The notes under the pieces were generated by a model, which did not search any database, was not told where the DNA came from, and worked only from the letters and a program-made list of their open reading frames with translations. A DNA stretch of 39,846 nt from Octopus bimaculoides (Eukaryota): NCBI RefSeq assembly GCF_001194135.2, contig NC_068983.1, positions 131,864,423 through 131,904,268 on the forward strand, written 5' to 3'. The position numbers were made by a program, and so were the translations under genes. Of the stretch, positions 1-39,846 are shown one piece after another (within the stretch, counting starts at the first letter, position 1; every line of letters starts with the position of its first letter).

Positions 1-323
1 TCAAAATACAAAGACCTGGAAATAGAGATAACTCGAATGTGGAATCAAAAAACAGAAACAATTCCTATCATAGTAGGTGCCTTAGGTATAATAAAAAAAT
101 ATTCAGACAAATACATAACAAAAGCACCAGGACTTACAAATATATATAACATACAGAAAATTGCACTACTGGGTACTGCACACATTCTACGCAAAACACT
201 TTCAATACAGTAAACATGAGAGCACCACAGCAAACCACAGCACATACCCAAGGCGCACAGAGCTGCTCTCGGTAGTGAAGTGAAAGCACGTTATTAAAAT
301 AAAACTACTGAACAATAATAATA
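1..323 (+). mobile_element. 3' end of an R4/Dong-type (RLE-encoding) non-LTR retrotransposon: ORF C-terminus, 3' UTR and (AAT)n flank
   Basis: Frame +1, 1-213, reads SKYKDLEIEITRMWNQKTETIPIIVGALGIIKKYSDKYITKAPGLTNIYNIQKIALLGTAHILRKTLSIQ*. The KYKDL..IPIIVGALG..LLGTAHILR pattern is the RLE C-terminus of R4/Dong elements. The UTR ends aaaactactgaac followed by aataataataat. Confidence 0.85.
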
Positions 324-330
324 ATATTAA

Positions 331-513
331 CAACATCGGGAAAATACCTTAGGAACGAGAACCCAGGTTCGGAATTTCTTCAGGAGACCTGATGAAGGCT
401 GGGGACTACATCAGCCGAAATGTTGTCTTAACAACAAACAAGATAAGGACGAATATCCGTCAAATGTAAATAACGTGAATAATGTACACAATTCCTCATC
501 TCTCAAATATAGA
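331..513 (+). mobile_element. 3' half (hammerhead-containing tail) of the tRNA-head/HHR SINE; head absent
   Basis: Aligns by eye with 14114-14285 (ttaggaa.gagaacccaggttc...cctga.gaaggctgg...tcagccgaaa...aacaacaaacaagat.aggac...attcctcatctct.aaatataga). Confidence 0.8.
384..429 (+). ncRNA. Minimal type-I hammerhead ribozyme motif (copy 1)
   Basis: Helix I gagac(384-388)/gtctt(425-429); core CTGATGA(389-395) plus an extra A; helix II ggctg(397-401)/cagcc(412-416); GAAA(417-420); then t-GTT. There is no helix III loop, so it could fold only as a dimer. Activity untested. Confidence 0.7.
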
Positions 514-680
514 CCGGTATTTCGTCTGTCTTTACGTTCTTAGTTCTAATTCTGCCGCGGTTGATTTTGCGTTTCGTTCTCTCGGGGTCGAAAAATTAAG
601 TACCAGTTGCGTACTGGGTCGATCTAATTGAGTGGCACATCCCCACAAGTTTCGGGCCTTGTGCCTAGAGTAGAAAAGAA
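514..680 (+). mobile_element. 5'-truncated tRNA-derived SINE (same family as 697-914)
   Basis: Colinear with 697-914 (ggtattt.gtctg...tac.ttct.agttc...ggtcga...aagta.cagtt...ggccttgtgcc...agtagaaaagaa). Confidence 0.8.
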
Positions 681-1810: not shown

Positions 1811-3361
1811 ATATTTACACAAGAAGCCACACAGACATGAAGCTAATTTGGGAAGAAAGAGTTTTTGTCTCTGAAGAGGTCGCAAATGACGACAAGCGGT
1901 CTTTCAAAAACACATCTAGTTGATTGATTTACTGACTATTAATTTGTATGAAAAATAAAATGTAAATTTCGTCATCAGCATGCAAAACTGCATTAGACTA
2001 GAAAATCTGAAAACAAAGCAGGAAAAAAAAATTAAATACTTCAACTGACTGGAGATTTTTTTTTTTTTTGGAATCCAGTAATATAATCTTAATTCTATTA
2101 CGTCAATCCCTCACACAAAAGATATGAAATAGACACGGCTGGAATTTCCTTAGTTTGTAATTGGTTGGTGGTAGAGGAAAAGAAATTACCGTTAAAAGAG
2201 GGGACCTGGAGAGTAATTAGCACGTTATTGTCAGAAGTATCCCACATGTGCCATAGGAAACTGTTCATAGTGACGAAGATTATGTTCTGTAAATGCTAAT
2301 TTAAACGAAAAATCGAGCTGATCAATCTCATACAACTAGCTGCCAGATAAATGTAGAATGTGGTGGTCTGCATTTGGGGATAAAAGCAGATTCATCTCAA
2401 GTTGATAAAGACATTCTCAGCGAGAAATAGTTGAAACACCAACTCACTGAAAATTTGCAATGATATACTCAATGATAAGCAATGATATACTCAACGATAT
2501 CAATAGTGTACCTCTACAGGCCAAACATCTACAAACTAACAAGTAAGGTTCTGAGTGGTTGCCGAAGCTGTTATAATACACAGACTAATCTCATTCAAAT
2601 TTTATCATGTTAAAAATGAATGTGTATATTGCATAATGTGGATCTCGGTACATAATATGATAATGACAGATGTGATAGTCATTAATGAATTTCTGACTTT
2701 CAACTGTAGTTCCAATCAGTAAGCAATAACAAAAACCACTGACATAACCGTGCAGTGCCGCTCTGGTTTGTCACTATGAAATAAGAAATTCTGTAGGTAT
2801 TAATTAGACGTTGATATATTTGTAATTAGTGCCTCTAAAGCAACGAATGTTTAATTTTCAAATTAAATTATGCTTTCAATAGTATCATTTGTCACAATAT
2901 TTATGCTATAAAAATTTGTTTAATTTATTGCAAAACTAATTACGTATCAAAGCGTTACCTATGTAATAATATTTGAAAGCATGACACCAACGATATTCCG
3001 AAATGATTTTTCCAATAATTTACCGAAACGGTTTAATATCGATACAAAAACAACGTTATTCCGTGGAGATATTCATACATATAAAATGTGTACATAAAAG
3101 CAATTACTGAAAAACAACATTCCGATGTTCAGCCATTCGATTATTAGCACGCTGACCTGGACTTTGCATTAACACACTAAATGTACAGGCGAAAATGTGT
3201 AAATTACACAAAAGTCATTGGAGCACATTTAAGAACCGTTCATAGACACAAAAATCCATAAATACATAGATGCACAAACGCATACAAACACATAAACATA
3301 TATACATACATACACATACACCCACACATAGATTATATAATATATTATATATAACATATAA

Positions 3362-3417: not shown

Positions 3418-4338
3418 NNNNNNNNNNNNNNNNNNNNNNNNNNNNNNNNNNNNNNNNNNNNNNNNNNNNNNNNNNNNNNNNNNNNNNNNNNNNNNNNNNN
3501 NNNNNNNNNNNNNNNNNNNNNNNNNNNNNNNNNNNNNNNNNNNNNNNNNNNNNNNNNNNNNNNNNNNNNNNNNNNNNNNNNNNNNNNNNNNNNNNNNNNN
3601 NNNNNNNNNNNNNNNNNNNNNNNNNNNNNNNNNNNNNNNNNNNNNNNNNNNNNNNNNNNNNNNNNNNNNNNNNNNNNNNNNNNNNNNNNNNNNNNNNNNN
3701 NNNNNNNNNNNNNNNNNNNNNNNNNNNNNNNNNNNNNNNNNNNNNNNNNNNNNNNNNNNNNNNNNNNNNNNNNNNNNNNNNNNNNNNNNNNNNNNNNNNN
3801 NNNNNNNNNNNNNNNNNNNNNNNNNNNNNNNNNNNNNNNNNNNNNNNNNNNNNNNNNNNNNNNNNNNNNNNNNNNNNNNNNNNNNNNNNNNNNNNNNNNN
3901 NNNNNNNNNNNNNNNNNNNNNNNNNNNNNNNNNNNNNNNNNNNNNNNNNNNNNNNNNNNNNNNNNNNNNNNNNNNNNNNNNNNNNNNNNNNNNNNNNNNN
4001 NNNNNNNNNNNNNNNNNNNNNNNNNNNNNNNNNNNNNNNNNNNNNNNNNNNNNNNNNNNNNNNNNNNNNNNNNNNNNNNNNNNNNNNNNNNNNNNNNNNN
4101 NNNNNNNNNNNNNNNNNNNNNNNNNNNNNNNNNNNNNNNNNNNNNNNNNNNNNNNNNNNNNNNNNNNNNNNNNNNNNNNNNNNNNNNNNNNNNNNNNNNN
4201 NNNNNNNNNNNNNNNNNNNNNNNNNNNNNNNNNNNNNNNNATATATATATATAAATAGATAAATAGATAAATAGATAGATAGATAGATAGATAGATAAAT
4301 AAATAAATAGATAGATAGATAGATAGATGGATGGATAG

Positions 4339-6050: not shown

Positions 6051-6109
6051 ACAACATGAACACAAAGACATACGCACAAAACTATGCATCTCTCTCTATA
6101 TATGCATGC

Positions 6110-6856
6110 ATGCATGCATGTATGTATGTATGTATGTATGTATGTATGTATGTATGTGTATATATATATATGTGGGGGTGTGTATGTTTGTGTGTGTATA
6201 TATATAAGGAACTTCCTGGCAGTTTCAATCGAACAAATTCACTGAGGCATTGCTGAGACAGGGTTATTGTAGAGCACATTTACCAAGATTTCTTTTAATC
6301 AGTTCTAGAAAATAATAATTTTAGAGCTGTTTTATTTTTGCATCTTGAGTGGTCTGAATAGTAAACGTACATGAAAGGGGAATTCTTCGACAGCTGGAAT
6401 AATGCTTGAAGAACTGTCATATTTTGAAAGAGGATTCTGGTAGTGATTATTAGCGCATGCACCAAAGGTTTCGAATTCAGTTGCGAAAATGAAGAGTTTG
6501 TGACTGATTCAGCATTGCATGGACGTTTCCTTCACATTTCCAATAATTTGTGTAAGTGCACATATGTATGCATATGCAAGTGCATTTGTGTGTATCTATC
6601 TAAAGATTTCGGTCAAAATTTAAACTAAAATGCATGAAAGATGAAATCTAAGATAGAATTAGAACAAGCATAGTAAGTGCTTACTGTCTCCTGACAAATA
6701 TCTCTAGGTTTATGATTTCCGTGATCTCACAGGTTCCTACTTAGAGACGAAATTTGCAACGTACGGCCATTTTGAAAAAGTGTTAACACTAAGTATACAC
6801 GGGAGCGAAACACGCACACACTCACACATACACACACACACTCTCACACATACATG

Positions 6857-6912
<56 letters not shown>

Positions 6913-7451
6913 TGTATGTATGTATATGTAAGTATATGTATGTATGAATGTCTATAAGGAAGTATGTATATATATATATATATGTATGTATGCCTGTGTA
7001 TACCATACAACATCTTTAAACTTGAACGAATGAGTTGTAAAAAAGCTAAGACACGTAAGTGCAACAATATTTCAGAAATCTAAGACGCAGTCAAGTTTTA
7101 ATCCATTACTTTCCTGACACCTGTCAACCATATTTTGCTTTGAAACATGTAAGAAATTTCGGACTAAGTAACTAACTTCTCCATATAACTGCCGCAGAAA
7201 TATAATTCAAGAAGAAAACTGTTCGAGAGAATTTTAGCGGTTAAAAAATGTCCCAGTAAAGTAAGCAAGTAATTCTACCAGAGTAAAAATATACATTAGG
7301 TTTACCTAATCTATTAATGTGAAAGTATATCACTGCATATTGTTGTAACTGTACGTATATGTGAGAATTAACATTCAATGATTGCTTGTGTAGGTTTCAA
7401 TAACATAAATGCACATAGTTACACATGTATGTATGTATGTATGTATGTATG

Positions 7452-7530
<79 letters not shown>

Positions 7531-8472: not shown

Positions 8473-9166
8473 NNNNNNNNNNNNNNNNNNNNNNNNNNNN
8501 NNNNNNNNNNNNNNNNNNNNNNNNNNNNNNNNNNNNNNNNNNNNNNNNNNNNNNNNNNNNNNNNNNNNNNNNNNNNNNNNNNNNNNNNNNNNNNNNNNNN
8601 NNNNNNNNNNNNNNNNNNNNNNNNNNNNNNNNNNNNNNNNNNNNNNNNNNNNNNNNNNNNNNNNNNNNNNNNNNNNNNNNNNNNNNNNNNNNNNNNNNNN
8701 NNNNNNNNNNNNNNNNNNNNNNNNNNNNNNNNNNNNNNNNNNNNNNNNNNNNNNNNNNNNNNNNNNNNNNNNNNNNNNNNNNNNNNNNNNNNNNNNNNNN
8801 NNNNNNNNNNNNNNNNNNNNNNNNNNNNNNNNNNNNNNNNNNNNNNNNNNNNNNNNNNNNNNNNNNNNNNNNNNNNNNNNNNNNNNNNNNNNNNNNNNNN
8901 NNNNNNNNNNNNNNNNNNNNNNNNNNNNNNNNNNNNNNNNNNNNNNNNNNNNNNNNNNNNNNNNNNNNNNNNNNNNNNNNNNNNNNNNNNNNNNNNNNNN
9001 NNNNNNNNNNNNNNNNNNNNNNNNNNNNNNNNNNNNNNNNNNNNNNNNNNNNNNNNNNNNNNNNNNNNNNNNNNNNNNNNNNNNNNNNNNNNNNNNNNNN
9101 NNNNNNNNNNNNNNNNNNNNNNNNNNNNNNNNNNNNNNNNNNNNNNNNNNNNNNNNNNNNNNNNNN

Positions 9167-13124: not shown

Positions 13125-13945
13125 TGTATTGGAATATACCAGAACATTATTGCTTTGTCATTTTCAGAGACTTTTTCTGAGGTGTGCCTGTAACATCTTT
13201 TTTCTATTGTCATTCCATAGTGCTGGCATAGCTTCCAGTGTATATGGGTCCCAAGTCTTTCATGTCTTTGGGTATATTTCTTCTTAGCCAAGATTCGGCA
13301 ATCACAGACAATATGGTTTATTGTTTCTTCATCTCCAGATATTCTGCAGTTACTTGTGTCTTCTTCATCATGCGTTTTATATGATCTCTGGTTGGGAGGT
13401 TTTGATCTTGTACTGCAATTAAAAATCCTTCTGTTTCTGTTTTCAGTCCTGAGTTTCTCAGCCATTGTTACGATTTTACTTTGTCTATTTCTTTCCTGTT
13501 TAGCTTATCCCAATTTTTACCATGGCTCTGCTAGTATCTCGTTCAATTTCTTGACCAGCGTCTTATGTATTCCTGCTAGATATTTTAGTCAGGAATTAGG
13601 GATATTGTGCCTGGGTGCCTTCCAGTTGCTCAGCTTTTGCAGTGCCTGGGTGACCTCTTCCGATGTTATAGGTTTCCAGAGTTTTTCAGGAGCTGTGTTT
13701 CTTGTTTAATAGATCTTTTCTGGGGTTGTTACTTCGCCGAACATAATTCTTTCCAAAATTCTTCCACGTCTGCTTTTGGTGGTGTATTGATCTCTATTTT
13801 ATTTTTCCAAAGTTCTAGGGGGAATATTTTGGGGTTGGAGTTTGTTTTCTTCAAAGAATCATTGACGTTTCTCATACCGATGGATTCTTTGTGCCTCGGT
13901 GAGGATATATAGCTTTAACTGCGATTTTACCTCAGATATACCGTG
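13125..13945 (-). mobile_element. Internally deleted R4/Dong element: pre-RT region fused to the CCHC region, RT absent, 3' truncated
   Basis: Minus strand gives ...VEEFWK...EEVTQALQKLSNWKAP...KLNEILAEP, joined at about 13521-13525 to ...NCRI..DEETINHIV..C..LAKK.Y..RH...HWKLCQHYG...PIHT (ORF track 13094-13465). Confidence 0.75.
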
Positions 13946-13960
13946 TTCAGTAATTTTGTA

Positions 13961-13993
<33 letters not shown>
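13961..13993. repeat. (TTA)n tract forming the 3' flank of the Dong copy at 13994-16805
   Basis: Followed by (t)tcagtag, the Dong terminus in reverse, as at 39523-39545. Confidence 0.8.
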
Positions 13994-13996
<3 letters not shown>

Positions 13997-13997
13997 T

Positions 13998-14286
13998 AGG
14001 GCATATGGCATAGTGGTTAAGAGCGCGGGCTACTAACCCCAAGATTCCGAGTTCGATTCACGGCAGCGACCTGATTAATAATAGTAATACTAATAATAAT
14101 ATAATAATAGTAACGTCGTTAGGAATGAGAACCCAGGTTCAAAATTTCCCCAAGACACCTGACGAAGGCTGGGGGGTATATCAGCCGAAACGTAGAGTTA
14201 ACAACAAACAAGATGAGGACAAATATCCGTCAAATGTAAATAATATAAATAATGTAAATAATTCCTCATCTCTTAAATATAGAACA
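13998..14286 (+). mobile_element. Full-length composite SINE: tRNA-like head, (TAA)n spacer, hammerhead, terminal hairpin
   Basis: Head 13998-14071 has A box TGGCATAGTGG (14006-14016) and B box GTTCGATTC (14051-14059). TAA-rich spacer 14076-14113. HHR 14154-14199. Inverted repeat agatgagga(14211-14219)/tcctcatct(14263-14271). Confidence 0.8.
14154..14199 (+). ncRNA. Minimal type-I hammerhead ribozyme motif (copy 2)
   Basis: gacac-CTGACGA(14159-14165)-a-ggctg...cagcc-GAAA(14187-14190)-c-GTA-gagtt. Helix I has one A-A mismatch. Cleavage triplet GUA. Confidence 0.72.
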
Positions 14287-14630
14287 GTTTAATTATTATC
14301 ACGTCCTTTGACTGCACAACCGAGCGCAGTTCTGTCTGCCTTGCTTATGTGCTGTGGTTTGTTGTGATGATCTTAATTTTACTGTATTGAAAGTGCTTTA
14401 CGTAGGATGTGTGCGGTGCCTATTAGTATTGTTTTCTGTATGATATATATACATGTAAGTCCTGGTGACTTTTGTTATGTATTTGTCTGAATATTTTTTT
14501 ATCATAACTAATCCGCGTACTATGATAGGAATGGTTTTTTTTTTTTTAGACTCAGCGTTCGAGTTACATCTAATTCCAAATCTTTGTATTGCGAAAGTTT
14601 CTCCGTTTCTTTCAGAGAAACATTATTATC

Positions 14631-15577
14631 GCCCTTATAAATGAAACTTCTCCAATACTAAATAGGAAATATACATAGTAGATATCTTACCCCCATACCC
14701 ACAGTTTACATAGGTAGACAAAAATAGTTAGTGGTCTGTTATGTAGATAGATGTACGTATGTGTGTATGTGTGTGTGTGTGTGTGAGTGCGTGTGTGTGT
14801 GTGTGTGTGTGTCTGTATGTGTGTGTCTGTGTGTGCGTGTGGGTATATGCATATATGAGTATATGTACAAGAATGTAAGCGTATGGATATGAAAATAAAC
14901 AGATAAACATACAGATGGAGAGGAACATAGGTTATATGAACAGACCAGCACATATAATCAAATGGAGACAGAAACACGTGTCCATATATACACACATACT
15001 TTACTTCACTCAAGGACACATATGGAGACACGTGTCCAAGCGTATGGAGATGCACATCCATACATACAAACACGGCACATAGTTGCAAACACGCACACTC
15101 ACTCAGACATGCACACAAGTGGACAGATGTGTATGCATATACAAACACATGCACACACACTCATACATAAAAACACAAACACAGACACGCAAACACTTGA
15201 ATATGCAGAATACATGCATACAGATGCACATGCATACGTACATATATACATATACATACACACGCATATATACATACACACATGCATGCATACATACATA
15301 CGTGCATGCATAGGACACACACACACTGACCCACACACATGCGCACAAAACAAGCGAAAAGGAACGCAGTGTAAATAACGGACAGACTCAAGACTATTGA
15401 AAAAGTTGCAAGACGCAACGAAAATTTTAGAAAAATAAAAATAAGAAATAAGTGGAAATTTTAGCGGTGAGAAGTTAAATTATAAAGCACAAAAAGAAAA
15501 TGACACTCCCAGACACAACAGAATATGCTTCAACGCATTAACTCCCATAAAGAATGTTGCAAGCCAAATCCATGATC
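14631..15577. repeat. ~950-bp TG-rich/CA-rich insert bounded by an imperfect 12-14-bp direct repeat
   Basis: gaaacattattatc (14617-14630) and gaaattatcatc (15578-15589) flank it. The Dong reading frame is continuous across it. Confidence 0.6.
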
Positions 15578-16890: not shown

Positions 16891-17137
16891 NNNNNNNNNN
16901 NNNNNNNNNNNNNNNNNNNNNNNNNNNNNNNNNNNNNNNNNNNNNNNNNNNNNNNNNNNNNNNNNNNNNNNNNNNNNNNNNNNNNNNNNNNNNNNNNNNN
17001 NNNNNNNNNNNNNNNNNNNNNNNNNNNNNNNNNNNNNNNNNNNNNNNNNNNNNNNNNNNNNNNNNNNNNNNNNNNNNNNNNNNNNNNNNNNNNNNNNNNN
17101 NNNNNNNNNNNNNNNNNNNNNNNNNNNNNNNNNNNNN

Positions 17138-20438: not shown

Positions 20439-20600
20439 AGGCGCAGGAGTGGCTGTGTGGTAAGTAGCTTGTTTACCAACCACATGGTTCAGGGTTCATT
20501 CCCACTGAGTGGCACCTTCGGCATACTACTATAGCTTCGGGCCGACCAAAACCTTGGACGGAAACTGAAAAGAAGCCCGTCGTTTTATATGCATATATAA
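20439..20600 (+). mobile_element. tRNA-derived SINE of a further family
   Basis: aggcgcaggagtggctgtgtggtaag (A-box-like) ... gggttcattccc (B-box-like) ... ggcaccttcggca ... gacggaaactgaaaagaagcccgtcg, then a TA-rich tail. Resembles a recalled octopus SINE. Confidence 0.7.
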
Positions 20601-20647
20601 ATGTGAACATTTGCAAACAACACCTCGCAAATCTTCGAGATGCCCCA

Positions 20648-20968
20648 TTATGGTGTCGGATTGTAACTGGGGATGAAAAATGGATCTATTTTCGTAATTC
20701 TAAATTGAGAAATCAGTGGCTTTCTTCCAGCCTGACCTCAGAACCTGTTGTCAAATAAGGGCGGTTTGCGCAGTAGGTCATCCAGTGCATTGGGTGTAAT
20801 TTCGAGAGTGTGTAAGCAATTTGAACTTGTCTGAGATGGTTAAGCTGTGAACACTATTCTGTATGCTCAACAACTGCAAGAATTATATCATGGTTTGAAA
20901 GCCCGCTAAGCTGCATTGCTCAATCAAAGAGGAGCACTGCTACAGCATAACATTTCCACAGTGCACAG
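20648..20968 (+). mobile_element. Decayed mariner transposase catalytic-domain fragment
   Basis: Reads LWCRIVTGDEKWIYFRNSKLRNQW...FELV..G..VNTILYAQQLQ.L...LLNQRGALLQHN, i.e. the IVTGDEKW first-Asp motif through the decayed LQHDNA motif. Confidence 0.85.
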
Positions 20969-21689: not shown

Positions 21690-23100
21690 TCCGTTCGTTC
21701 TTCTAGCCTTTTTCCTACAACCTTTCTAGTATTTAGGCAGTAGATTCTGGCTGTCAAAGTGCTCGGAAATGATTTTTGGAAGCATTCTTTTTAACAGCTT
21801 CCACACTAATGGTAAGCAAGTGACTGCTCTATAATTGCTACCTCTATTATCCTTGCATTTGTATTTCATAAGCAGTATTGTTCTCCCTCTAGTCATCCAA
21901 TCTGGCATTATTCGCACGTTAAGGCAATCCTGAATTTGTACCTTCAACCTCTCATGTAAGCTACTAAATTTCATTAACCAGTACCTTTGGACTAAATCTG
22001 GTCCTGAGCCATTCCAATTAAGTATTTTGCCTTATATGTTACTTATTAATGCACTAATTAGTTTTAGATCTCGTTGCTTTTCACTCACTACTTTTTCCTT
22101 CACTTTCTTTAAGCATACTCAGTCTCCATTATAACTGACTGGCTAATTACTCCAGAATATTTTAACTTTTGTATTAGATTTCTTATCTTCAGTACTTTCT
22201 TCTCCACAATTTATTTGGTTATGAAATTTCCTTTAGTCTGTCAAAGATAATCTAGTCCGTTGATACTGATCTATTCTTTACAGATATCTGGAAAGCTTAA
22301 TTGCTACTGCAATGGTGCGCGGTTTCAGCTCTTCTATGACTGTCTCAAATCCTTTCTCTTTGATTAAGCATCTTTTCTCAAAAGAAGATTTAAATCTTGT
22401 GTTTCCTAACTTGTTCAGTTTCCAGGGTTCTATTCTACTCAGATATTGTCTTAAAGTCTTCAGTTTAATTTTCCATATTTGTATTTTTGTATTTTTTCTA
22501 ATCTTTCCTCGTGGCATATTTAATTTTCTAGTAACTCTCTTGAATAGATCAGAACGTTAGTGTAACCTATATTTTTATTATCTACCGTACTGATAACAGA
22601 ATCTACTTTCCTAGTCATATCGAGAATCTTCCTTCTGACGGTACCTTTTAATGCTGGCAATCTTTTTCTTTCTTTACTCATTGCTTACTGCAACTCATTT
22701 AAAATCTTCTGAACCTCATCACTTAAGTTGCTTAAATCGCTGGTGCCAATTGTCCCATCTTGACTGGTATTTATTTCTATTATTATTTTTTCCTTTAGGT
22801 TCTTCTTTGGTTTGAACTCTATCTCTTATATTGTTGCTTGTCTTTTCTATCACCTAGTTGTTCATTTCCAGTTCTCTTGTAATCTCTCCCACCACCAATT
22901 CTACCATCCACTTTCTTCTAATAACACTAGCTTGGTCTACTAATCTCTGCTCAGTCGCTTTAAACATACACTTTAATACCCAAAGTGTTAACCGCTGTTT
23001 TCTCTAACCTCTTTCTTTTAGGTTCACTTTCTAGGTAGAACTGAACAACTATCCTGTTTTCTTGCTGTTTCACTTCCTCATTTTTACTCTATTATTTGGC
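21690..23100 (-). mobile_element. Decayed 5' half of an R4/Dong-type ORF (N-terminal domain to start of RT), different subfamily
   Basis: Frameshifted pieces: ...ATEQRLVDQA.VIRR..., KEKGFETVIEELK.R..A.A.K.SRY, NW..SGPDLVQ.YWLMKFSSLHERLK.Q.QDCL...PDWMTRGRT.LL.K...NYRAVTCLPLVWKLL...NLLP...KGCRK (ORF track 21726-21974, 22278-22517). Confidence 0.8.
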
Positions 23101-24163: not shown

Positions 24164-24660
24164 NNNNNNNNNNNNNNNNNNNNNNNNNNNNNNNNNNNNN
24201 NNNNNNNNNNNNNNNNNNNNNNNNNNNNNNNNNNNNNNNNNNNNNNNNNNNNNNNNNNNNNNNNNNNNNNNNNNNNNNNNNNNNNNNNNNNNNNNNNNNN
24301 NNNNNNNNNNNNNNNNNNNNNNNNNNNNNNNNNNNNNNNNNNNNNNNNNNNNNNNNNNNNNNNNNNNNNNNNNNNNNNNNNNNNNNNNNNNNNNNNNNNN
24401 NNNNNNNNNNNNNNNNNNNNNNNNNNNNNNNNNNNNNNNNNNNNNNNNNNNNNNNNNNNNNNNNNNNNNNNNNNNNNNNNNNNNNNNNNNNNNNNNNNNN
24501 NNNNNNNNNNNNNNNNNNNNNNNNNNNNNNNNNNNNNNATGTATGTATGTATGTATGTATGTATGTATGTATATATATATGTATATATATGTATGTGTAT
24601 ATGTATGCATGTATGTATGTATGTATGTATGTATGTATGTATGCATGTATGTATATACAC
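24164..24660. other. Assembly gap (N 24164-24538) followed by (TATG)n
   Basis: Direct reading. Confidence 0.95.
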
Positions 24661-27451: not shown

Positions 27452-28203
27452 TACGAGGGCTGATCAATAAGTATCCGGACTGTTGCTATAGTAACGAAGC
27501 TAAAGTACGTTGAGTAAAACCGCTTGGCACATTGACCTTGTACTTTTCCGTATATGCGCACTAAACGTTAACGTTCAAGTTTATTTGCCATGTCTATAGC
27601 AGTGCTGGGAGGGACGTATGTAGCGTGTGATCGTCACATTGATTATGACAGGGAAAGCTAAGTAGAGAATCTAACCCGAGTGTGTTTTTGGTTAGCTGAA
27701 AGCAGTTTTGACCCGAAAGTGGCAGACACACGTCTCATACCCAAATCTTCAGTGGTAATGGAGTGAACTGAACTGTAACTAATGTGCATATCCTCTGATA
27801 ACTCACTGATGGTGATTCGACGATTTCCCCTCACAGCTTGGACGCTCATCTGCGATGTTTTTCTCAGTTCTGCTGTTTGCGGATCTCCCAAAGCGTTTGT
27901 CAATAACAAAATCTTTTCGGCTATCTTGGAAACGTCTGAACCACTTGTGCATGTGTGTGAAGTTCATACACTTAGACACGCGAGTCCCTACAACACTATA
28001 TCACACAAATGCCACTTTTGCTCCGAGTAGTCACTCTCGATAAAGGAGCGCATTATAAATTTGTCTTATGCTATTTTACGTAGATGTCTGAATAGGTATC
28101 GCCATGACAACTTTTTCTGTCGTGTTCAATGCATCGAACACACGCTACACACCTTCATTCCAAACAGTGCCGTAAACAGCGGAAGTGAGCTAGAACGTTA
28201 AAG
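27452..28203. mobile_element. Rearranged mariner: 5' end on + (TIR, leader, start of ORF) fused to an inverted second 5' portion on -
   Basis: TA-cgagggctgatcaataagtatccggac (TIR) at 27452. ATG at 27645. From about 27672 the minus strand encodes VRGNRRITISELSEDMHIS..SVHSI.TEDLGMRRVSA.F..KLLS.NQK (ORF 27658-27909). 28108-28203 is an inverted copy of 27565-27660. Confidence 0.75.
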
Positions 28204-29947: not shown

Positions 29948-30370
29948 TCTCTCTCTCTCTCTCTCTCTGTATATATATATATATATATATATATNNNNNN
30001 NNNNNNNNNNNNNNNNNNNNNNNNNNNNNNNNNNNNNNNNNNNNNNNNNNNNNNNNNNNNNNNNNNNNNNNNNNNNNNNNNNNNNNNNNNNNNNNNNNNN
30101 NNNNNNNNNNNNNNNNNNNNNNNNNNNNNNNNNNNNNNNNNNNNNNNNNNNNNNNNNNNNNNNNNNNNNNNNNNNNNNNNNNNNNNNNNNNNNNNNNNNN
30201 NNNNNNNNNNNNNNNNNNNNNNNNNNNNNNNNNNNNNNNNNNNNNNNNNNNNNNNNNNNNNNNNNNNNNNNNNNNNNNNNNNNNNNNNNNNNNNNNNNNN
30301 NNNNNNNNNNNNNNNNNNNNNNNNNNNNNNNNNNNNNNNNNNNNNNNNNNNNNNNNNNNNNNNNATATAT
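29948..30370. other. (CT)n/(TA)n with assembly gap (N 29995-30364)
   Basis: Direct reading. Confidence 0.95.
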
Positions 30371-32681: not shown

Positions 32682-33094
32682 NNNNNNNNNNNNNNNNNNN
32701 NNNNNNNNNNNNNNNNNNNNNNNNNNNNNNNNNNNNNNNNNNNNNNNNNNNNNNNNNNNNNNNNNNNNNNNNNNNNNNNNNNNNNNNNNNNNNNNNNNNN
32801 NNNNNNNNNNNNNNNNNNNNNNNNNNNNNNNNNNNNNNNNNNNNNNNNNNNNNNNNNNNNNNNNNNNNNNNNNNNNNNNNNNNNNNNNNNNNNNNNNNNN
32901 NNNNNNNNNNNNNNNNNNNNNNNNNNNNNNNNNNNNNNNNNNNNNNNNNNNNNNNNNNNNNNNNNNNNNNNNNNNNNNNNNNNNNNNNNNNNNNNNNNNN
33001 NNNNNNNNNNNNNNNNNNNNNNNNNNNNNNNNNNNNNNNNNNNNNNNNNNNNNNNNNNNNNNNNNNNNNNNNNNNNNNNNNNNNNNNNNNNNNN
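32682..33094. other. Assembly gap
   Basis: N run. Confidence 0.99.
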
Positions 33095-33698: not shown

Positions 33699-34196
33699 CA
33701 CAAAATCGTCACTAATTTGACATCCGCTATTACCTTCTAATCATCAGTATTCACAACATCATGATACTACAAGACATGCCTCAATGTTATGGGGAAATCA
33801 AAAGTGGAACTAGTAATATCAGCATTAGCAGTAGCAACATAATAGTTAAAGCACCATGGGAATAACGCATCGATTTCCCGTCTTGAAATTTTAATAAATA
33901 TGTCATTTACACACGTAGCACGGAACTGTTACATCCAGGATTATCAAGTATTTTGTAAACCTCTTTCCCTAGAATTTATATATATGTATATATATATTGC
34001 TTCTTCGATGCAAATGCAAAAGTAGACGGTAACCAGAAAAAAGAAGAAAAGAACAAAACTGTAATCTAATGTTGGAAGTCTTCTGGGGTTTTTAGTATTA
34101 CATATTGAAATTTGTAACATTTACTGTTGCCTCAAATGTAAATATTCTCTCTCGATATCACAGTATGAAAACATTGAAAATAAGAATCGAGTAACG

Positions 34197-34259
<63 letters not shown>

Positions 34260-37200
34260 TATTATTATTTTTTTCATCAGCATCGTTCAGTTCTATTTTC
34301 ATTTCTTATTGAGTTTCTTCCTGACACCTAGAGCAGAGAAACGTACTGTATACTTTCGTAGGCCATTAAAACAAGAACACAACATTGATCCTTTACAGAG
34401 TCATGTAATAGAGAAAAAGGGGAAGACAGAGAGAAAAAAGAAAAATAAAAATAATAGAAAAGTAAACAAATAAAATAAAGGGAGAAAAAGGAAAGAGAAT
34501 TCACAGCGACAATGCTCTTCTGAATACGTGTGATGTACCAGTTACGACAATCTTTTGCACATGGATGGTAAGCCAGGGATCATTCTCAGATGATTTTCAT
34601 TTCATTTTTTTCATCATTCCAAGGGATCCTACAATCACTGGTATTGTAAATGTCTTGAGATGCTACATCTTTTTGACTTCGATCTTTATATTTTCACAAC
34701 AATATCTGGTTTATTTCCCTTGATGGTCCAATCAGTACATACTGGGAAGTCCCAAATAATAGTTACATTTTCTCCTTCAGTTACAGAGTGGTGCTTGTAT
34801 CATTTGTCAGCAGTTTTGATTTTATAATGCCGACCCATGTAGATATTGATCAACTTTGCCATGTGTTGATTCGTACCCTGCAGGTGCTAAAACCTTACAT
34901 CCAGAGATTAGGTGGTTCACTGTTTCTATCCAATCGTTGCAGTATCGGCAGTTTCGGTCTATACCATTTTTCATCACATCGGCTTGATAGTTCCGGGTCA
35001 ATAAGCTCGATAGTTCCGGGTCTCTGCCTTTCGCCCTGAGCTCAGTAGCCACTGATAGGTGTGCTTCTGGTCTACATCAACTTATTTGCTACGAGCCACA
35101 TATTTGCCACGCAGAGCATTGTGTTCCCACCTATCAACCAATTGTTCAAACACATTTTGCTTTGCTATTGATTTCAACTTCTTTGCAACTACAGCTGCTG
35201 CTCTTCCCTCATAATATTCAACCTGGGGATTATGCATAAACACACTTGGACATCTTTTGCTCTCCTTCATAACAGAATGAAGCTTCTCACTTCTTTAATG
35301 GTTTTCAACGAGCTTTAGCATCCAGTCCTTAAATGTTTCAAGATGTTTTGCCAGTCCAAATGTGGTGATTTTGTAGGAGATTTCAAGTTGGATGAAGCCT
35401 CGACCTCCTTGAGCTCTGGGTAGGTATAGACGATCTGCGTCTGTCTTTGGCTGGTGCATCTTATTGCAAGTCAGCAGTTTACAGATTTTCCTGTCAGTCT
35501 TCCGTATTTCGCTCCTATTCCAGTTCAACACATTTTAACTCTAAATAACAAGAACTGCTGAGAAATTTATAACCAACACCTTGTTACGTGCATTTAACTT
35601 GGATTTTTGAGCTGCTTGAACTCTCCTGTAACACTCCTTCATGATCTTCTCTTTCATACTTGCATGTTGAATGCCGGAGCTCTCATTTATTCCGAGGTAT
35701 TTGTAAGTTTGTTCCTGCTCGAGTTTTTTATGACTGCTTCAACATTCAACACCACTGAATGTGAGGTCTGCAGTCCCCCATTCTGGAAAGTGGCCTTTGC
35801 ACATTTACAATGACCTAATTCCATCCCAATGATATCATGAATGCTTTCACAGTACGTAATAGTCCTTTAAGCTCGTTATCTTCTTTACCATACAGTTTTA
35901 TGACATCCATACAAAATATTTGACTTATTCTCTTGTCGCAAATTTTATATCCATACCCTGTTCTGTTAAGTTCACTTGTAAGGGGTATTAAGGCTATGCA
36001 GAAAATTAAAGGTGAAAGTGAGTCACCTTGGAAAATGCCGCAGTTGATATTGATATTTTTTGAGGTCAGTACTCCATTAGAGTGGTATAATTGGTGTTTC
36101 GTATTTCACATTGACATGTTGTGCTTCAAGAAGGTTGAAATCATAGGAGAAATATCCAGCGTTTCAAGATTCATGCAGAATTGAGATTTCTGCGTTTGAT
36201 ATAATAGTTCTCAAGGATCATGTTATTGGTTAAGAGTTGGTTTTTGCATCCATACGGGCCTCGTCGGCACCCTTTTTGTTCAGTGTGGAAAATACCGTAC
36301 TGTTCCATAATTTTGTATGCTTTCTCCACGAGGATGGGTGTGAACAAAATGCATACGAGTTAGAGAGATATGTTATTGGCCGAGAGCTTTGGGAAAATGT
36401 GTTCTATTATTCTTCGGGAGTAGGTAAGTAATACCTCTTGCTAACCAGTCAAGTGTTTATGTAGGATCTCTCATAATTATATTGATTACCTGGACTGACT
36501 ATTCGTGTGCGCACGTGAGCTAGGCAACCCAGACATTTGGCACTCTGTAATTATCAGGAGACTTCCACTTATACGCCTTCATGTGTGTCATCCTTAAGTC
36601 TGCTATTGTGATGTCTTCCCATGCTTGTTCTGGTAAGTTTTGTTAGGATCCTTCTGTGTGTCTAATCCAGTCTGCATTTTTATTGTAAATCTTTTCATTG
36701 CTCCAGATATTTTTCCATAAGTTTTTAACTCGTCCATGGCAGCATGGAGTGGGGTCTTCAATGGTTATTTTCTCCTTCCTTATTTTTCTGTAAAATGTTT
36801 TTGTATCGGATGTGAACAGCTTATTTTATTTGTAAAATTTGTTTCCCTTCTCAAATATTCGTATTCTTTGAGATTCTGTTTGAAATTTTTGTTACACTGT
36901 TTCTTTCGCTGAAGGCAGGTCTTCTGTAGGTGAGAATCTGTTTTCTCTTCATCTGTCTTCTTTTTTTTTTTTTTTGGTGTTTACATTGTTTCCACAGATT
37001 AGTTCATTCAATATTGATATTTCAACTCTCATTATGTCAATCTCTTTTCTCACTTTTACTTTTCCATTTTGTTAATCTTCTAAGGTTTCTATTTCTTTGT
37101 TTTTTTTTTCAGAGGAATACAGCTGGTTTCAGTTGTCTTAGCAACTGCGTAAGTAATTTAATTTAATTCAATGAGATCTGGTTTTAGTTCTTGTAGAATT

Positions 37201-38602: not shown

Positions 38603-39106
38603 NNNNNNNNNNNNNNNNNNNNNNNNNNNNNNNNNNNNNNNNNNNNNNNNNNNNNNNNNNNNNNNNNNNNNNNNNNNNNNNNNNNNNNNNNNNNNNNNNN
38701 NNNNNNNNNNNNNNNNNNNNNNNNNNNNNNNNNNNNNNNNNNNNNNNNNNNNNNNNNNNNNNNNNNNNNNNNNNNNNNNNNNNNNNNNNNNNNNNNNNNN
38801 NNNNNNNNNNNNNNNNNNNNNNNNNNNNNNNNNNNNNNNNNNNNNNNNNNNNNNNNNNNNNNNNNNNNNNNNNNNNNNNNNNNNNNNNNNNNNNNNNNNN
38901 NNNNNNNNNNNNNNNNNNNNNNNNNNNNNNNNNNNNNNNNNNNNNNNNNNNNNNNNNNNNNNNNNNNNNNNNNNNNNNNNNNNNNNNNNNNNNNNNNNNN
39001 NNNNNNNNNNNNNNNNNNNNNNNNNNNNNNNNNNNNNNNNNNNNNNNNNNNNNNNNNNNNNNNNNNNNNNNNNNNNNNNNNNNNNNNNNNNNNNNNNNNN
39101 NNNNNN
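38535..39106. other. (AAT)n/(TA)n then assembly gap (N 38603-39106)
   Basis: Direct reading. Confidence 0.95.
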
Positions 39107-39522: not shown

Positions 39523-39846
39523 TTATTATTATTATTGTTCAGTAGTTTTATTTTTATAACGTGCTTTCACTTCACTACCGAGCGCAGCTCTGTGCGCCTT
39601 GGGTATGTGCTATGGTTTGCTGTGGGGCTCTTATGTTTACTGTATTGAAAGTGTTTTGCGTAGAATGTGTGCAGTACCCAGTAGTGCAATTTTCTGTATG
39701 TTATATATATTTGTAAGTCCTGGTGTTTTTGTTATGTATTTGTCTGAATATTTTTTATTATACCTAAGGCACCTATTATGATAGGAATTGTTTCTGTTTT
39801 TAGATTCCACATTCGAGTTATCTCTATTTCCAGGTCTTTGTATTTT
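39523..39846 (-). mobile_element. 3' end of an R4/Dong element, near-identical inverted copy of 1-323
   Basis: (TTA)n-gttcagtagtttt.... Reverse complement of 1-323 with about nine differences counted by eye. ORF stop at 39637-39639. Confidence 0.9.

Follow-up and report, generated by a model that had tools for sequence, protein, structure and literature searches.

A tRNA-headed insert with a Penelope-type minimal hammerhead motif in the genome of Octopus bimaculoides

Short interspersed elements (SINEs) are defined by their dependence on long interspersed elements (LINEs). Papers on octopus repeats describe abundant tRNA-Core and tRNA-Deu SINEs as well as active Penelope-like elements (PLEs), and make no mention of ribozymes. 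The subject of this report is a 288-bp insert in Octopus bimaculoides in which a tRNA-like head and a (TAA)n spacer are followed by a module that contains a minimal hammerhead ribozyme (min-HHR) motif. The insert lies in a stretch of 39,846 nucleotides (NCBI RefSeq assembly GCF_001194135.2, contig NC_068983.1, positions 131,864,423 to 131,904,268 of the forward strand), which is called the window below and is numbered from its first letter. We regard it as reasonably probable that the insert is a non-autonomous octopus retroposon composed of a degenerate tRNA head for RNA polymerase III (Pol III), an old (TAA)n tract, and a module of about 167 nt that resembles the 3' end or pseudo-long terminal repeat (pseudo-LTR) of a PLE and carries a min-HHR.

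The closest hammerheads described are the min-HHRs of metazoan PLEs (Cervera & de la Pena 2014, PMC4209133). They possess an unpaired base between positions 9 and 10.1 and a conserved G10.1-C11.1 pair. Their helix II is long, their helix I measures 4-5 bp, and the 15.2/16.2 segment is palindromic, so that two RNAs jointly form helix III. Most of the published motifs are solo, and dispersed single motifs are the rule in metazoans.

A Poseidon-type PLE of the anole Anolis carolinensis is the source of the mechanistic data used here (Frangieh et al. 2024, PMC11167929). The AUG of its open reading frame (ORF) lies within the CUGAUGA box of the hammerhead. The hammerhead cuts at +26, and reverse transcription starts internally at +111 to +118, which is 85-92 nt past the cut. 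The endonuclease favours AT-rich DNA with 5'-ATT-3', and the activity of the hammerhead is protein-assisted.

The DNA sample for the octopus element consists of the two copies of the hammerhead module in the window, at 349-517 (copy 1) and 14119-14287 (copy 2), with a head in copy 2 only. The limits of the copy 2 insert are given by a paralogous empty site. The insert splits the 3' end of a LINE, and an intact 3' end of the same LINE is present at 39524. Cutting out 14000-14287, with 13999 joined to 14288, results in a gap-free alignment of the flanks to this intact end. The alignment score is best when the left flank ends at 13999 and the right flank starts at 14288, and it is lower for every other choice of end points. 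Comparison with the empty site reveals neither a target-site duplication nor a loss of bases at the insert. Because excision restores the LINE end without duplication or loss, head, spacer and module most probably arrived as one unit, a single RNA-derived insert. This is the insertion of a discrete unit known from tRNA-derived SINEs.

The first base of the insert corresponds to tRNA position +2 in the Rfam tRNA alignment, and the last bases read ...ATAGAACAG / ...AAAUAUAGAACAG. No leftover TAA repeats are present 5' of the head. There is no TTTT within the composite element, and the first T4 downstream is not met before 14377 (copy 2) or 565 (copy 1). A reading on the reverse strand, in which the element would end in CTACTG(AAT)n, was rejected since CTACTG(AAT)n forms the tail of the LINE that the element splits. 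A first-pass annotation, made from the letters of the window, had listed the head, the TAA spacer, the hammerhead and a terminal inverted repeat, and each of these is present in the sequence where it was placed. The annotation had also treated the composite as one unit at 13998-14286, and the empty site gives almost the same interval.

Two features of SINEs are absent: the insert has no target duplication, and it has no 3' tail shared with a LINE. The annotation had proposed a comparison of the tail with LINE 3' ends, and by blastn the module has no similarity to any of those in the window. Only the internal spacer resembles a LINE tail.

The head is tRNA-related, begins at the 5' end of the tRNA, and carries both the A and the B box, as in tRNA-derived SINEs, with a tRNA score below threshold. 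The A box, TGGCATAGTGG (14006-14016), agrees with its consensus at every position, and the B-box-like sequence, AGTTCGATTCA (14050-14060), agrees with its own at 9 of 11. Positions 8-63 of the Rfam tRNA model align to 14006-14063 with 14.1 bits, which is below the gathering score of 29, and ARAGORN finds no tRNA in the head. The head is degenerate and of SINE type, for which a low tRNA score is usual. It resembles MIR/CORE-type heads (GCATAGTGGTTAAGAGC), and TTCCTCATCTCTTAAAT may be likened to the 3'-terminal part of the MIR/CORE domain. The spacer (14073-14118) aligns with TAA-like sequence upstream of copy 1 in an alignment that is of low complexity and ambiguous.

The type I hammerhead core (C3 U4 G5 A6 N7 G8 A9 ... 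G12 A13 A14 A15.1 ... U16.1 H17) is present in both copies of the module. The motif of copy 2 is GACAC-CUGACGA-A-GGCUGG-(8 nt)-UCAGCC-GAAA-CG-U-A-GAGUU (14154-14199), and that of copy 1 is GAGAC-CUGAUGA-A-GGCUGG-(8 nt)-UCAGCC-GAAA-UG-U-U-GUCUU (384-429), with CUGAUGA at 389-395. In copy 2, the 5' strand of helix I (14154-14158) is followed by CUGACGA (14159-14165), the unpaired A (14166), helix II (GGCUGG/UCAGCC, 14167-14172/14181-14186), GAAA (14187-14190), C-G (14191-14192), U (14193), A17 (14194), and the 3' strand of helix I (14195-14199). The unpaired base between A9 and G10.1 is A14166 in copy 2 and A396 in copy 1. Helix II is the same in both copies, with 6 bp that include the G10.1-C11.1 pair and one G.U. 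The 15.2/16.2 segment is the perfectly self-complementary ACGU in copy 2 and AUGU, self-complementary through G.U only, in copy 1. Helix I has 5 contiguous pairs in copy 1 and 4 of 5 in copy 2, where pair 2 is A.A. A helix III hairpin is absent from both copies, which have only ACGU or AUGU at this place, and the three-helix structure of the covariance models is therefore not found.

By all sequence criteria tested, the octopus motif belongs to the PLE-type min-HHRs, although no recognisable PLE surrounds it; the pseudo-LTR location of min-HHRs is not seen in the window. These hallmarks (PMC4209133) bear out the earlier description of a Penelope-type minimal hammerhead of the dimer type. The same annotation had noted the extra A after A9 as an oddity that the CChMVd viroid hammerhead tolerates. 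The base is indeed present, but it is diagnostic of the min-HHR class (PMC4209133).

The frequency of such motifs by chance was estimated with a descriptor of the published minimal hammerhead and 1500 first-order Markov simulations of the window. When both strands of the window were scanned, the descriptor matched at two sites only, 384-429 and 14154-14199. The simulations gave no strict matches, and 0.0013 matches per window when one mismatch in helix I was allowed. At this rate, tens of chance matches are expected in a genome of 2-3 Gb, and further evidence beyond the descriptor is therefore needed.

Part of that evidence comes from other organisms. A search of metagenome contigs with the core and helix II pattern returned 20 loci, none from octopus, of which 2 are canonical hammerheads with a helix III hairpin and 18 are minimal. 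Of the 18 minimal loci, 13 form a single family: solo units, each about 250 nt long, in coral-like contigs that have no long ORFs. Twelve of the 18 (11 of the 13 family copies and L012) have a self-complementary 15.2/16.2 segment, U-H, and a helix I of 5-6 bp, none of which was in the query; the other six have a helix I of 0-3 bp. Since most loci have hallmarks that were not queried, the core and helix II pattern marks real hammerhead lineages. The coral-like family (L002-L004, L007, L010, L011, L013-L019) has helix I UGUAC/GUACA, a bulged A, and a UA palindrome. Its helix II, GGCUGG/UCAGCC, is identical to that of the octopus motif, and neither a tRNA head nor an ORF of at least 200 aa is found nearby. 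The canonical hammerheads L001 and L006 have the same helix II as this family. Further copies of the octopus element were found neither in viral contigs, scanned twice, nor in metagenome contigs scanned with a 20-mer from outside the core.

The two octopus copies share a unit of 167 nt with 24 differences (85.6% identity). Nine of these differences lie inside the 46-nt motif: at N7, 15.2 and H17, at three bases of loop 2, and at three of helix I. The copies agree at all 23 core and helix-II positions and differ at 9 of the 23 free positions (Fisher one-sided p=0.0007 within the motif); for the constrained positions of the motif against the rest of the unit, the Fisher p is 0.02. Excess conservation of the core, which the first-pass annotation had named as a check, is thus found between the two copies. 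The pattern would fit copies derived from different source genes that kept the fold and, with n=2 sequences, is suggestive but not proof. At pair 3 of helix I, copy 1 has G386-C427 where copy 2 has C14156-G14197. This compensatory swap had led the annotation to call the hammerhead covarying; the swap is real, but it is one event in two sequences and the adjacent pair is A.A in copy 2. The hammerhead-like fold lies 0.7 kcal/mol above the predicted minimum in copy 1 and 3.7 kcal/mol above it in copy 2. For both copies, the best dimer in the predictions is more stable than the symmetric active one by about 10 kcal/mol.

The terminal hairpin singled out in the annotation has perfect arms in copy 2. 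In copy 1 (441-449/493-501), one of its pairs is the mismatch A.C, and a third copy, as deduced at the protein level, has lost 3 nt from the 5' arm. The hairpin is given no weight because it is perfect in copy 2 only.

The third copy is known as a protein translation only. Translation across the element has a single match among database proteins, the "uncharacterized protein" A0A0L8FV75 of Octopus bimaculoides, with 76% identity. This match keeps P-D-D-G-W, which corresponds to CUGAYGA-N-GGCUGG. A chimeric query made of the remaining frames of both copies matched no protein. One frame is open across the whole hammerhead module in both copies (14126-14290 and 331-540, both +). The 51-aa entry A0A0L8FV75_OCTBM is very likely a spurious gene model, as it is the translation of another copy of the repeat.

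Several features point, circumstantially, to mobilisation by PLE rather than LINE machinery. In both copies, the module ends 93 nt past the predicted cut, and both copies are sited at (ATT)n/(AAT)n LINE tails. Mobilisation of Penelope type had been suggested in the annotation, and the absence of a target-site duplication, the ATT-rich sites, the lack of similarity to LINE 3' ends and the 93-nt end agree with it, but the window holds no PLE gene.

The anatomy of the insert, its arrival as one unit, the class of its motif and the pattern of core conservation are observed. From here we infer Pol III transcription, a PLE partnership and any cleavage. Pol III would start at the head and transcribe through the spacer and the module, with no T4 before 14377. 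A PLE reverse transcriptase/endonuclease supplied in trans would recognise the hammerhead-proximal module and cut ATT-rich DNA. Synthesis of cDNA would begin internally, 93 nt downstream of the hammerhead site. The resulting copies would run from tRNA +2 to ...ATAGAACAG, without a tail and without a target duplication. The hammerhead, lacking a helix III of its own, would cleave (after A14194 or U424) only through ACGU/AUGU pairing of two RNAs or with the help of protein. It may be needed in source copies and not for each insertion, and it would be part of a PLE-derived recognition module. More tentatively, and with odds that we place below even, the insert may represent an octopus family of Pol III-driven, tRNA-headed SINEs that have a PLE as partner and in whose source copies the min-HHR is selected.

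A number of results weigh against the composite retroposon. The Rfam hammerhead models, whose use the annotation had proposed as a check, give no match at the gathering score or at E<=10 in the two regions or the whole window; a miss is expected because the motif has no helix III hairpin. Pair 2 of helix I, A387-U426 in copy 1, is the mismatch A14157.A14196 in copy 2, and the minimum-energy fold of copy 2 differs from the hammerhead fold. At the protein level, the third copy implies a G10.1.U11.1 wobble and a non-palindromic 15.2/16.2 segment. A search of the window with GIY-YIG and YxDD motifs and by inspection of ORFs revealed coding sequence for neither a PLE reverse transcriptase nor a GIY-YIG endonuclease. 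Published min-HHRs are poor cleavers in vitro (PMC4209133), and insertion by the anole PLE in vitro did without hammerhead cleavage (PMC11167929). The base is two DNA copies, with the head in one of them and a single insertion event, which are weak points. In addition, the head passes into CTGATT(AAT)n (14066-14080), which resembles the LINE terminus CTGAAC(AAT)n (305-320). This likeness therefore suggests that head and spacer could once have been a separate short LINE-dependent SINE before fusion with the module.

The last point is shared with a rather unlikely alternative in which two separate elements stand side by side and there is no family. One, a very short tRNA-SINE ending in (TAA)n, would owe its mobility to the (AAT)n-tailed LINE family of the window, and the other would be a solo PLE-derived min-HHR unit, truncated or non-autonomous, that integrated into the TAA/ATT tract as a nested insertion. 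Copy 1, in which the LINE tail takes the place held by head and spacer in copy 2, is in keeping with this. So are the head-less solo family of about 250 nt in coral-like contigs and the metazoan rule of dispersed single motifs (PMC4209133), and the ATT preference of the PLE endonuclease (PMC11167929) would steer insertions to such tails. However, nesting requires two scar-free events, the second exactly at the boundary of the first, in a LINE whose flanks rejoin perfectly, and no residual TAA repeats lie 5' of the head. That the motif is a non-functional relic or a chance match in the body of an ordinary LINE-mobilised SINE, with no role in its life cycle, is improbable. The missing Rfam match, a weak helix I that is broken in copy 2, the degraded motif of the third copy, the tens of random matches expected per 2-3 Gb genome and the independence of the anole insertion assay from hammerhead activity (PMC11167929) would all suit a relic. 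On the other side stand the G10.1-C11.1 closing pair and a helix II with the sequence found in independent min-HHR families, neither of them demanded by the descriptor, the differences between copies that miss all 23 constrained positions, and an element with neither target duplication nor LINE-like tail.

The annotation had also likened the element to a retrozyme. As a non-LTR retrozyme it would consist of hammerhead repeats in tandem, from which two cuts and a ligation yield a small circular RNA, and in common with such elements the octopus unit has a type I hammerhead, a vestigial self-complementary helix III, and an AT-rich length of a few hundred bases (PMC7229834). This idea did not hold up, and we consider it highly improbable: the copies are 13.7 kb apart with one hammerhead each, no tandem array of them is seen in the window, and the retrozymes described have canonical hammerheads and no tRNA head.

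Table 1. Features of the composite insert, the second module copy, and their surroundings in the window.
Feature	Position	Strand	Basis
Whole composite insert, 288 bp (tRNA-like head, (TAA)n spacer, hammerhead module)	14000..14287	+	Empty-site alignment
tRNA-derived, putative Pol III head; element begins at tRNA +2	14000..14072	+	Rfam tRNA model, A/B-box regex
Degenerate (TAA)n spacer: CTGATT, TAA-like repeats, GTAACGTCG	about 14073..14118	+	Sequence
Hammerhead module, copy 2	14119..14287	+	blastn and MAFFT against 349-517, 85.6% identity
Minimal type I hammerhead, copy 2; predicted cleavage A14194/G14195	14154..14199	+	Descriptor match with one helix-I mismatch allowed
9-bp inverted repeat 14211-14219/14263-14271, 43-nt loop	14211..14271	+	Present only in the minimum-energy fold of copy 2
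Hammerhead module, copy 1; no head in window; LINE tail 22 nt upstream	349..517	+	Sequence, blastn, MAFFT
Minimal type I hammerhead, copy 1; predicted cleavage U424/G425; 5-bp helix I	384..429	+	Strict descriptor match
3' end of young LINE: ORF2 C-terminus 1-210, stop 211-213, 3' untranslated region (UTR), (AAT)4 tail 314-326	1..326	+	Translation
Intact LINE 3' end, paralogous empty-site reference	39524..39846	-	Alignment
Left half of split older LINE: (ATT)10 tail and terminal CAGTAG	13964..13999	-	Empty-site alignment
Right half of split older LINE: 3' UTR and ORF2 C-terminus; more ORF2 pieces to about 16887	14288..14640	-	81% identity to intact end
Microsatellites with false microRNA matches	3263-3333, 6098-6162, 7425-7495, 15211-15279, 24539-24609 and others		Rfam E-value mode

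The LINE that surrounds both copies is best seen at the ends of the window, where 1-326 (+) and 39524-39846 (-) are inverted copies of one LINE 3' end that are 97% identical. Its ORF2 C-terminus ends in ...ALLGTAHILRKTLSIQ at the stop codon, and after the 3' UTR the terminus is ...CTACTGAAC(AAT)4. The LINE at the window ends is young and reaches past both of them. Its C-terminus is 87% identical to another O. bimaculoides entry and has relatives in shrimp, beetles and many invertebrates and ENA assemblies. Among the loci of its homologues, the sole octopus-like DNA is a 743-bp contig without flank, and two 20-kb loci are unrelated. Pfam gives only weak zf-RVT and RVT_1 matches on the LINE fragments. 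A place in the Dong/R4 clade was considered from the (AAT)n tail and the CCHC motif and was not established, the Pfam matches being weak. The sequence GTTCAGTAATTTTGTAATT at 13944-13962 (+), which borders the (ATT)10 tail on its left, is similar to the LINE terminus GTTCAGTAGTTTTATTTTT and is possibly a partial copy of the 3' end of the LINE.

The copy 1 module (349-517) is preceded by a 22-nt TAA-like junction (327-348) and, before that, by the (AAT)4 tail of the young LINE, which ends at 326. Two histories are possible for this copy. The LINE may have inserted into the spacer of a composite copy, whose head is then expected to the left of the window. Alternatively, an element truncated at its 5' end may have settled at the LINE tail. 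Of this LINE the window has only three 3' ends, and each module copy abuts one of them. The two copies adjoin its (AAT)n/(ATT)n ends, and a shared attraction to such tracts is therefore evident.

The window as a whole, with a G+C content of about 33%, is a gapped eukaryotic scaffold that is rich in microsatellites and transposon remnants. Seven N runs (3418-4240, 8473-9166, 16891-17137, 24164-24538, 29995-30364, 32682-33094, and 38603-39106; 3426 bases in total), mostly flanked by microsatellites, mark assembly gaps. The very long apparent repeats at these gaps are artefacts of the N runs. Apart from the weak tRNA match, Rfam gives only numerous sub-threshold matches to mir-297, mir-466, mir-1277 and others (E-value mode), which are low-complexity artefacts of (TATG)n, (TA)n and (CA)n microsatellites.

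A second tRNA-derived SINE, of another family than the composite element, is found at 20440-20600 (+), where A and B boxes are followed by a GGCACCTTCGGCA segment of CORE-like appearance. A mariner-like transposase remnant (20600-20755, ...IVTGDEKWIYF...) lies directly downstream of it. Another remnant, of a mariner/Tc1-type transposase, covers the N-terminal helix-turn-helix region at 27661-27963 (-). Pieces of at least one other non-LTR retrotransposon are present at 34825-36359 (-) and 21729-22031 (-), with weak RVT_1 and zf-RVT matches and the CCHC motif CRYCNDWIETVNHLISGC. The (ATT)n tract at 34196-34270 may be the tail of this other retrotransposon.

In the searchable literature, Dfam and Repbase lying outside the search, we found neither an account of tRNA-headed SINEs that carry a PLE-type hammerhead nor one of PLE-dependent SINEs. 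The composite family may already be catalogued there as a SINE without its hammerhead having been noted. If the proposed reading is true, the element would be the first case of a SINE-PLE partnership and would extend the dependence of SINEs to the third class of retroelements. It would also provide a natural hammerhead expressed from a Pol III promoter outside flatworms. Dispersed min-HHRs, retrozymes and SINEs of the Sm-alpha type, so far treated apart, would be connected by it. The role of the hammerhead in PLEs, be it dimeric or protein-assisted cleavage or the binding of protein, is an open question in the PLE literature, and the element would offer a compact, Pol III-expressed substrate for it. 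About a tenth of an octopus genome consists of SINEs, and a hammerhead-bearing SINE family could therefore matter for the annotation of octopus transcriptomes as well; one UniProt "protein" at the least is a plain translation of the repeat.

In the schistosome Sm-alpha elements, the hammerhead is canonical: its helix III, although short, is real, and there are contacts between its loops. The Sm-alpha and Sj-alpha SINE-like retroposons of Schistosoma (cited in PMC4209133) are likewise short and interspersed, and they combine Pol III boxes with a type I hammerhead. In contrast to Sm-alpha, the octopus motif is of the minimal PLE type, the two share no sequence similarity, and the host is a mollusc and thus belongs to another phylum. 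With the min-HHRs of metazoan PLEs (PMC4209133), the octopus motif shares CUGANGA and GAAA, the unpaired base between 9 and 10.1, G10.1-C11.1, a 6-bp helix II, and a helix I of 4-5 bp. Also common to both are the lack of a helix III hairpin, a self-complementary 15.2/16.2 segment that implies action as a dimer, and dispersed solo copies. Unlike them, the octopus motif stands downstream of a tRNA-like Pol III head in a 288-bp insert, with neither a PLE ORF nor a pair of pseudo-LTRs nearby.

In both the anole PLE (PMC11167929) and the octopus element, the hammerhead is followed by about 90 nt to the end of the copy (85-92 in the anole, 93 in the octopus), the targets are AT-rich with ATT, and the AUG of CUGAUGA occurs, in octopus copy 1. 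The octopus AUG frame, however, has only 26 codons before a stop, an AC-rich 3' stem-loop is not evident, and the partnership would be an inferred one. The non-LTR retrozymes of animals (PMC7229834; bioRxiv 10.64898/2026.07.22.740005) are, like the octopus element, non-autonomous, hammerhead-bearing, and proposed to depend on PLEs. Theirs are tandem units with canonical hammerheads and circular RNAs, whereas the octopus element, with its Pol III head, is monomeric and dispersed. The octopus tRNA SINEs OR1, OR2 and OK and the CORE-SINEs (Ohshima & Okada 1994, as cited in PMC4758252 and PMC4824008) share the tRNA head with A and B boxes. In contrast to them, no CORE domain was recognised in the octopus insert, its body is the hammerhead module, and it has neither a LINE-like tail nor a target duplication. 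The composite is probably new as a variant, of kinds that are already known.

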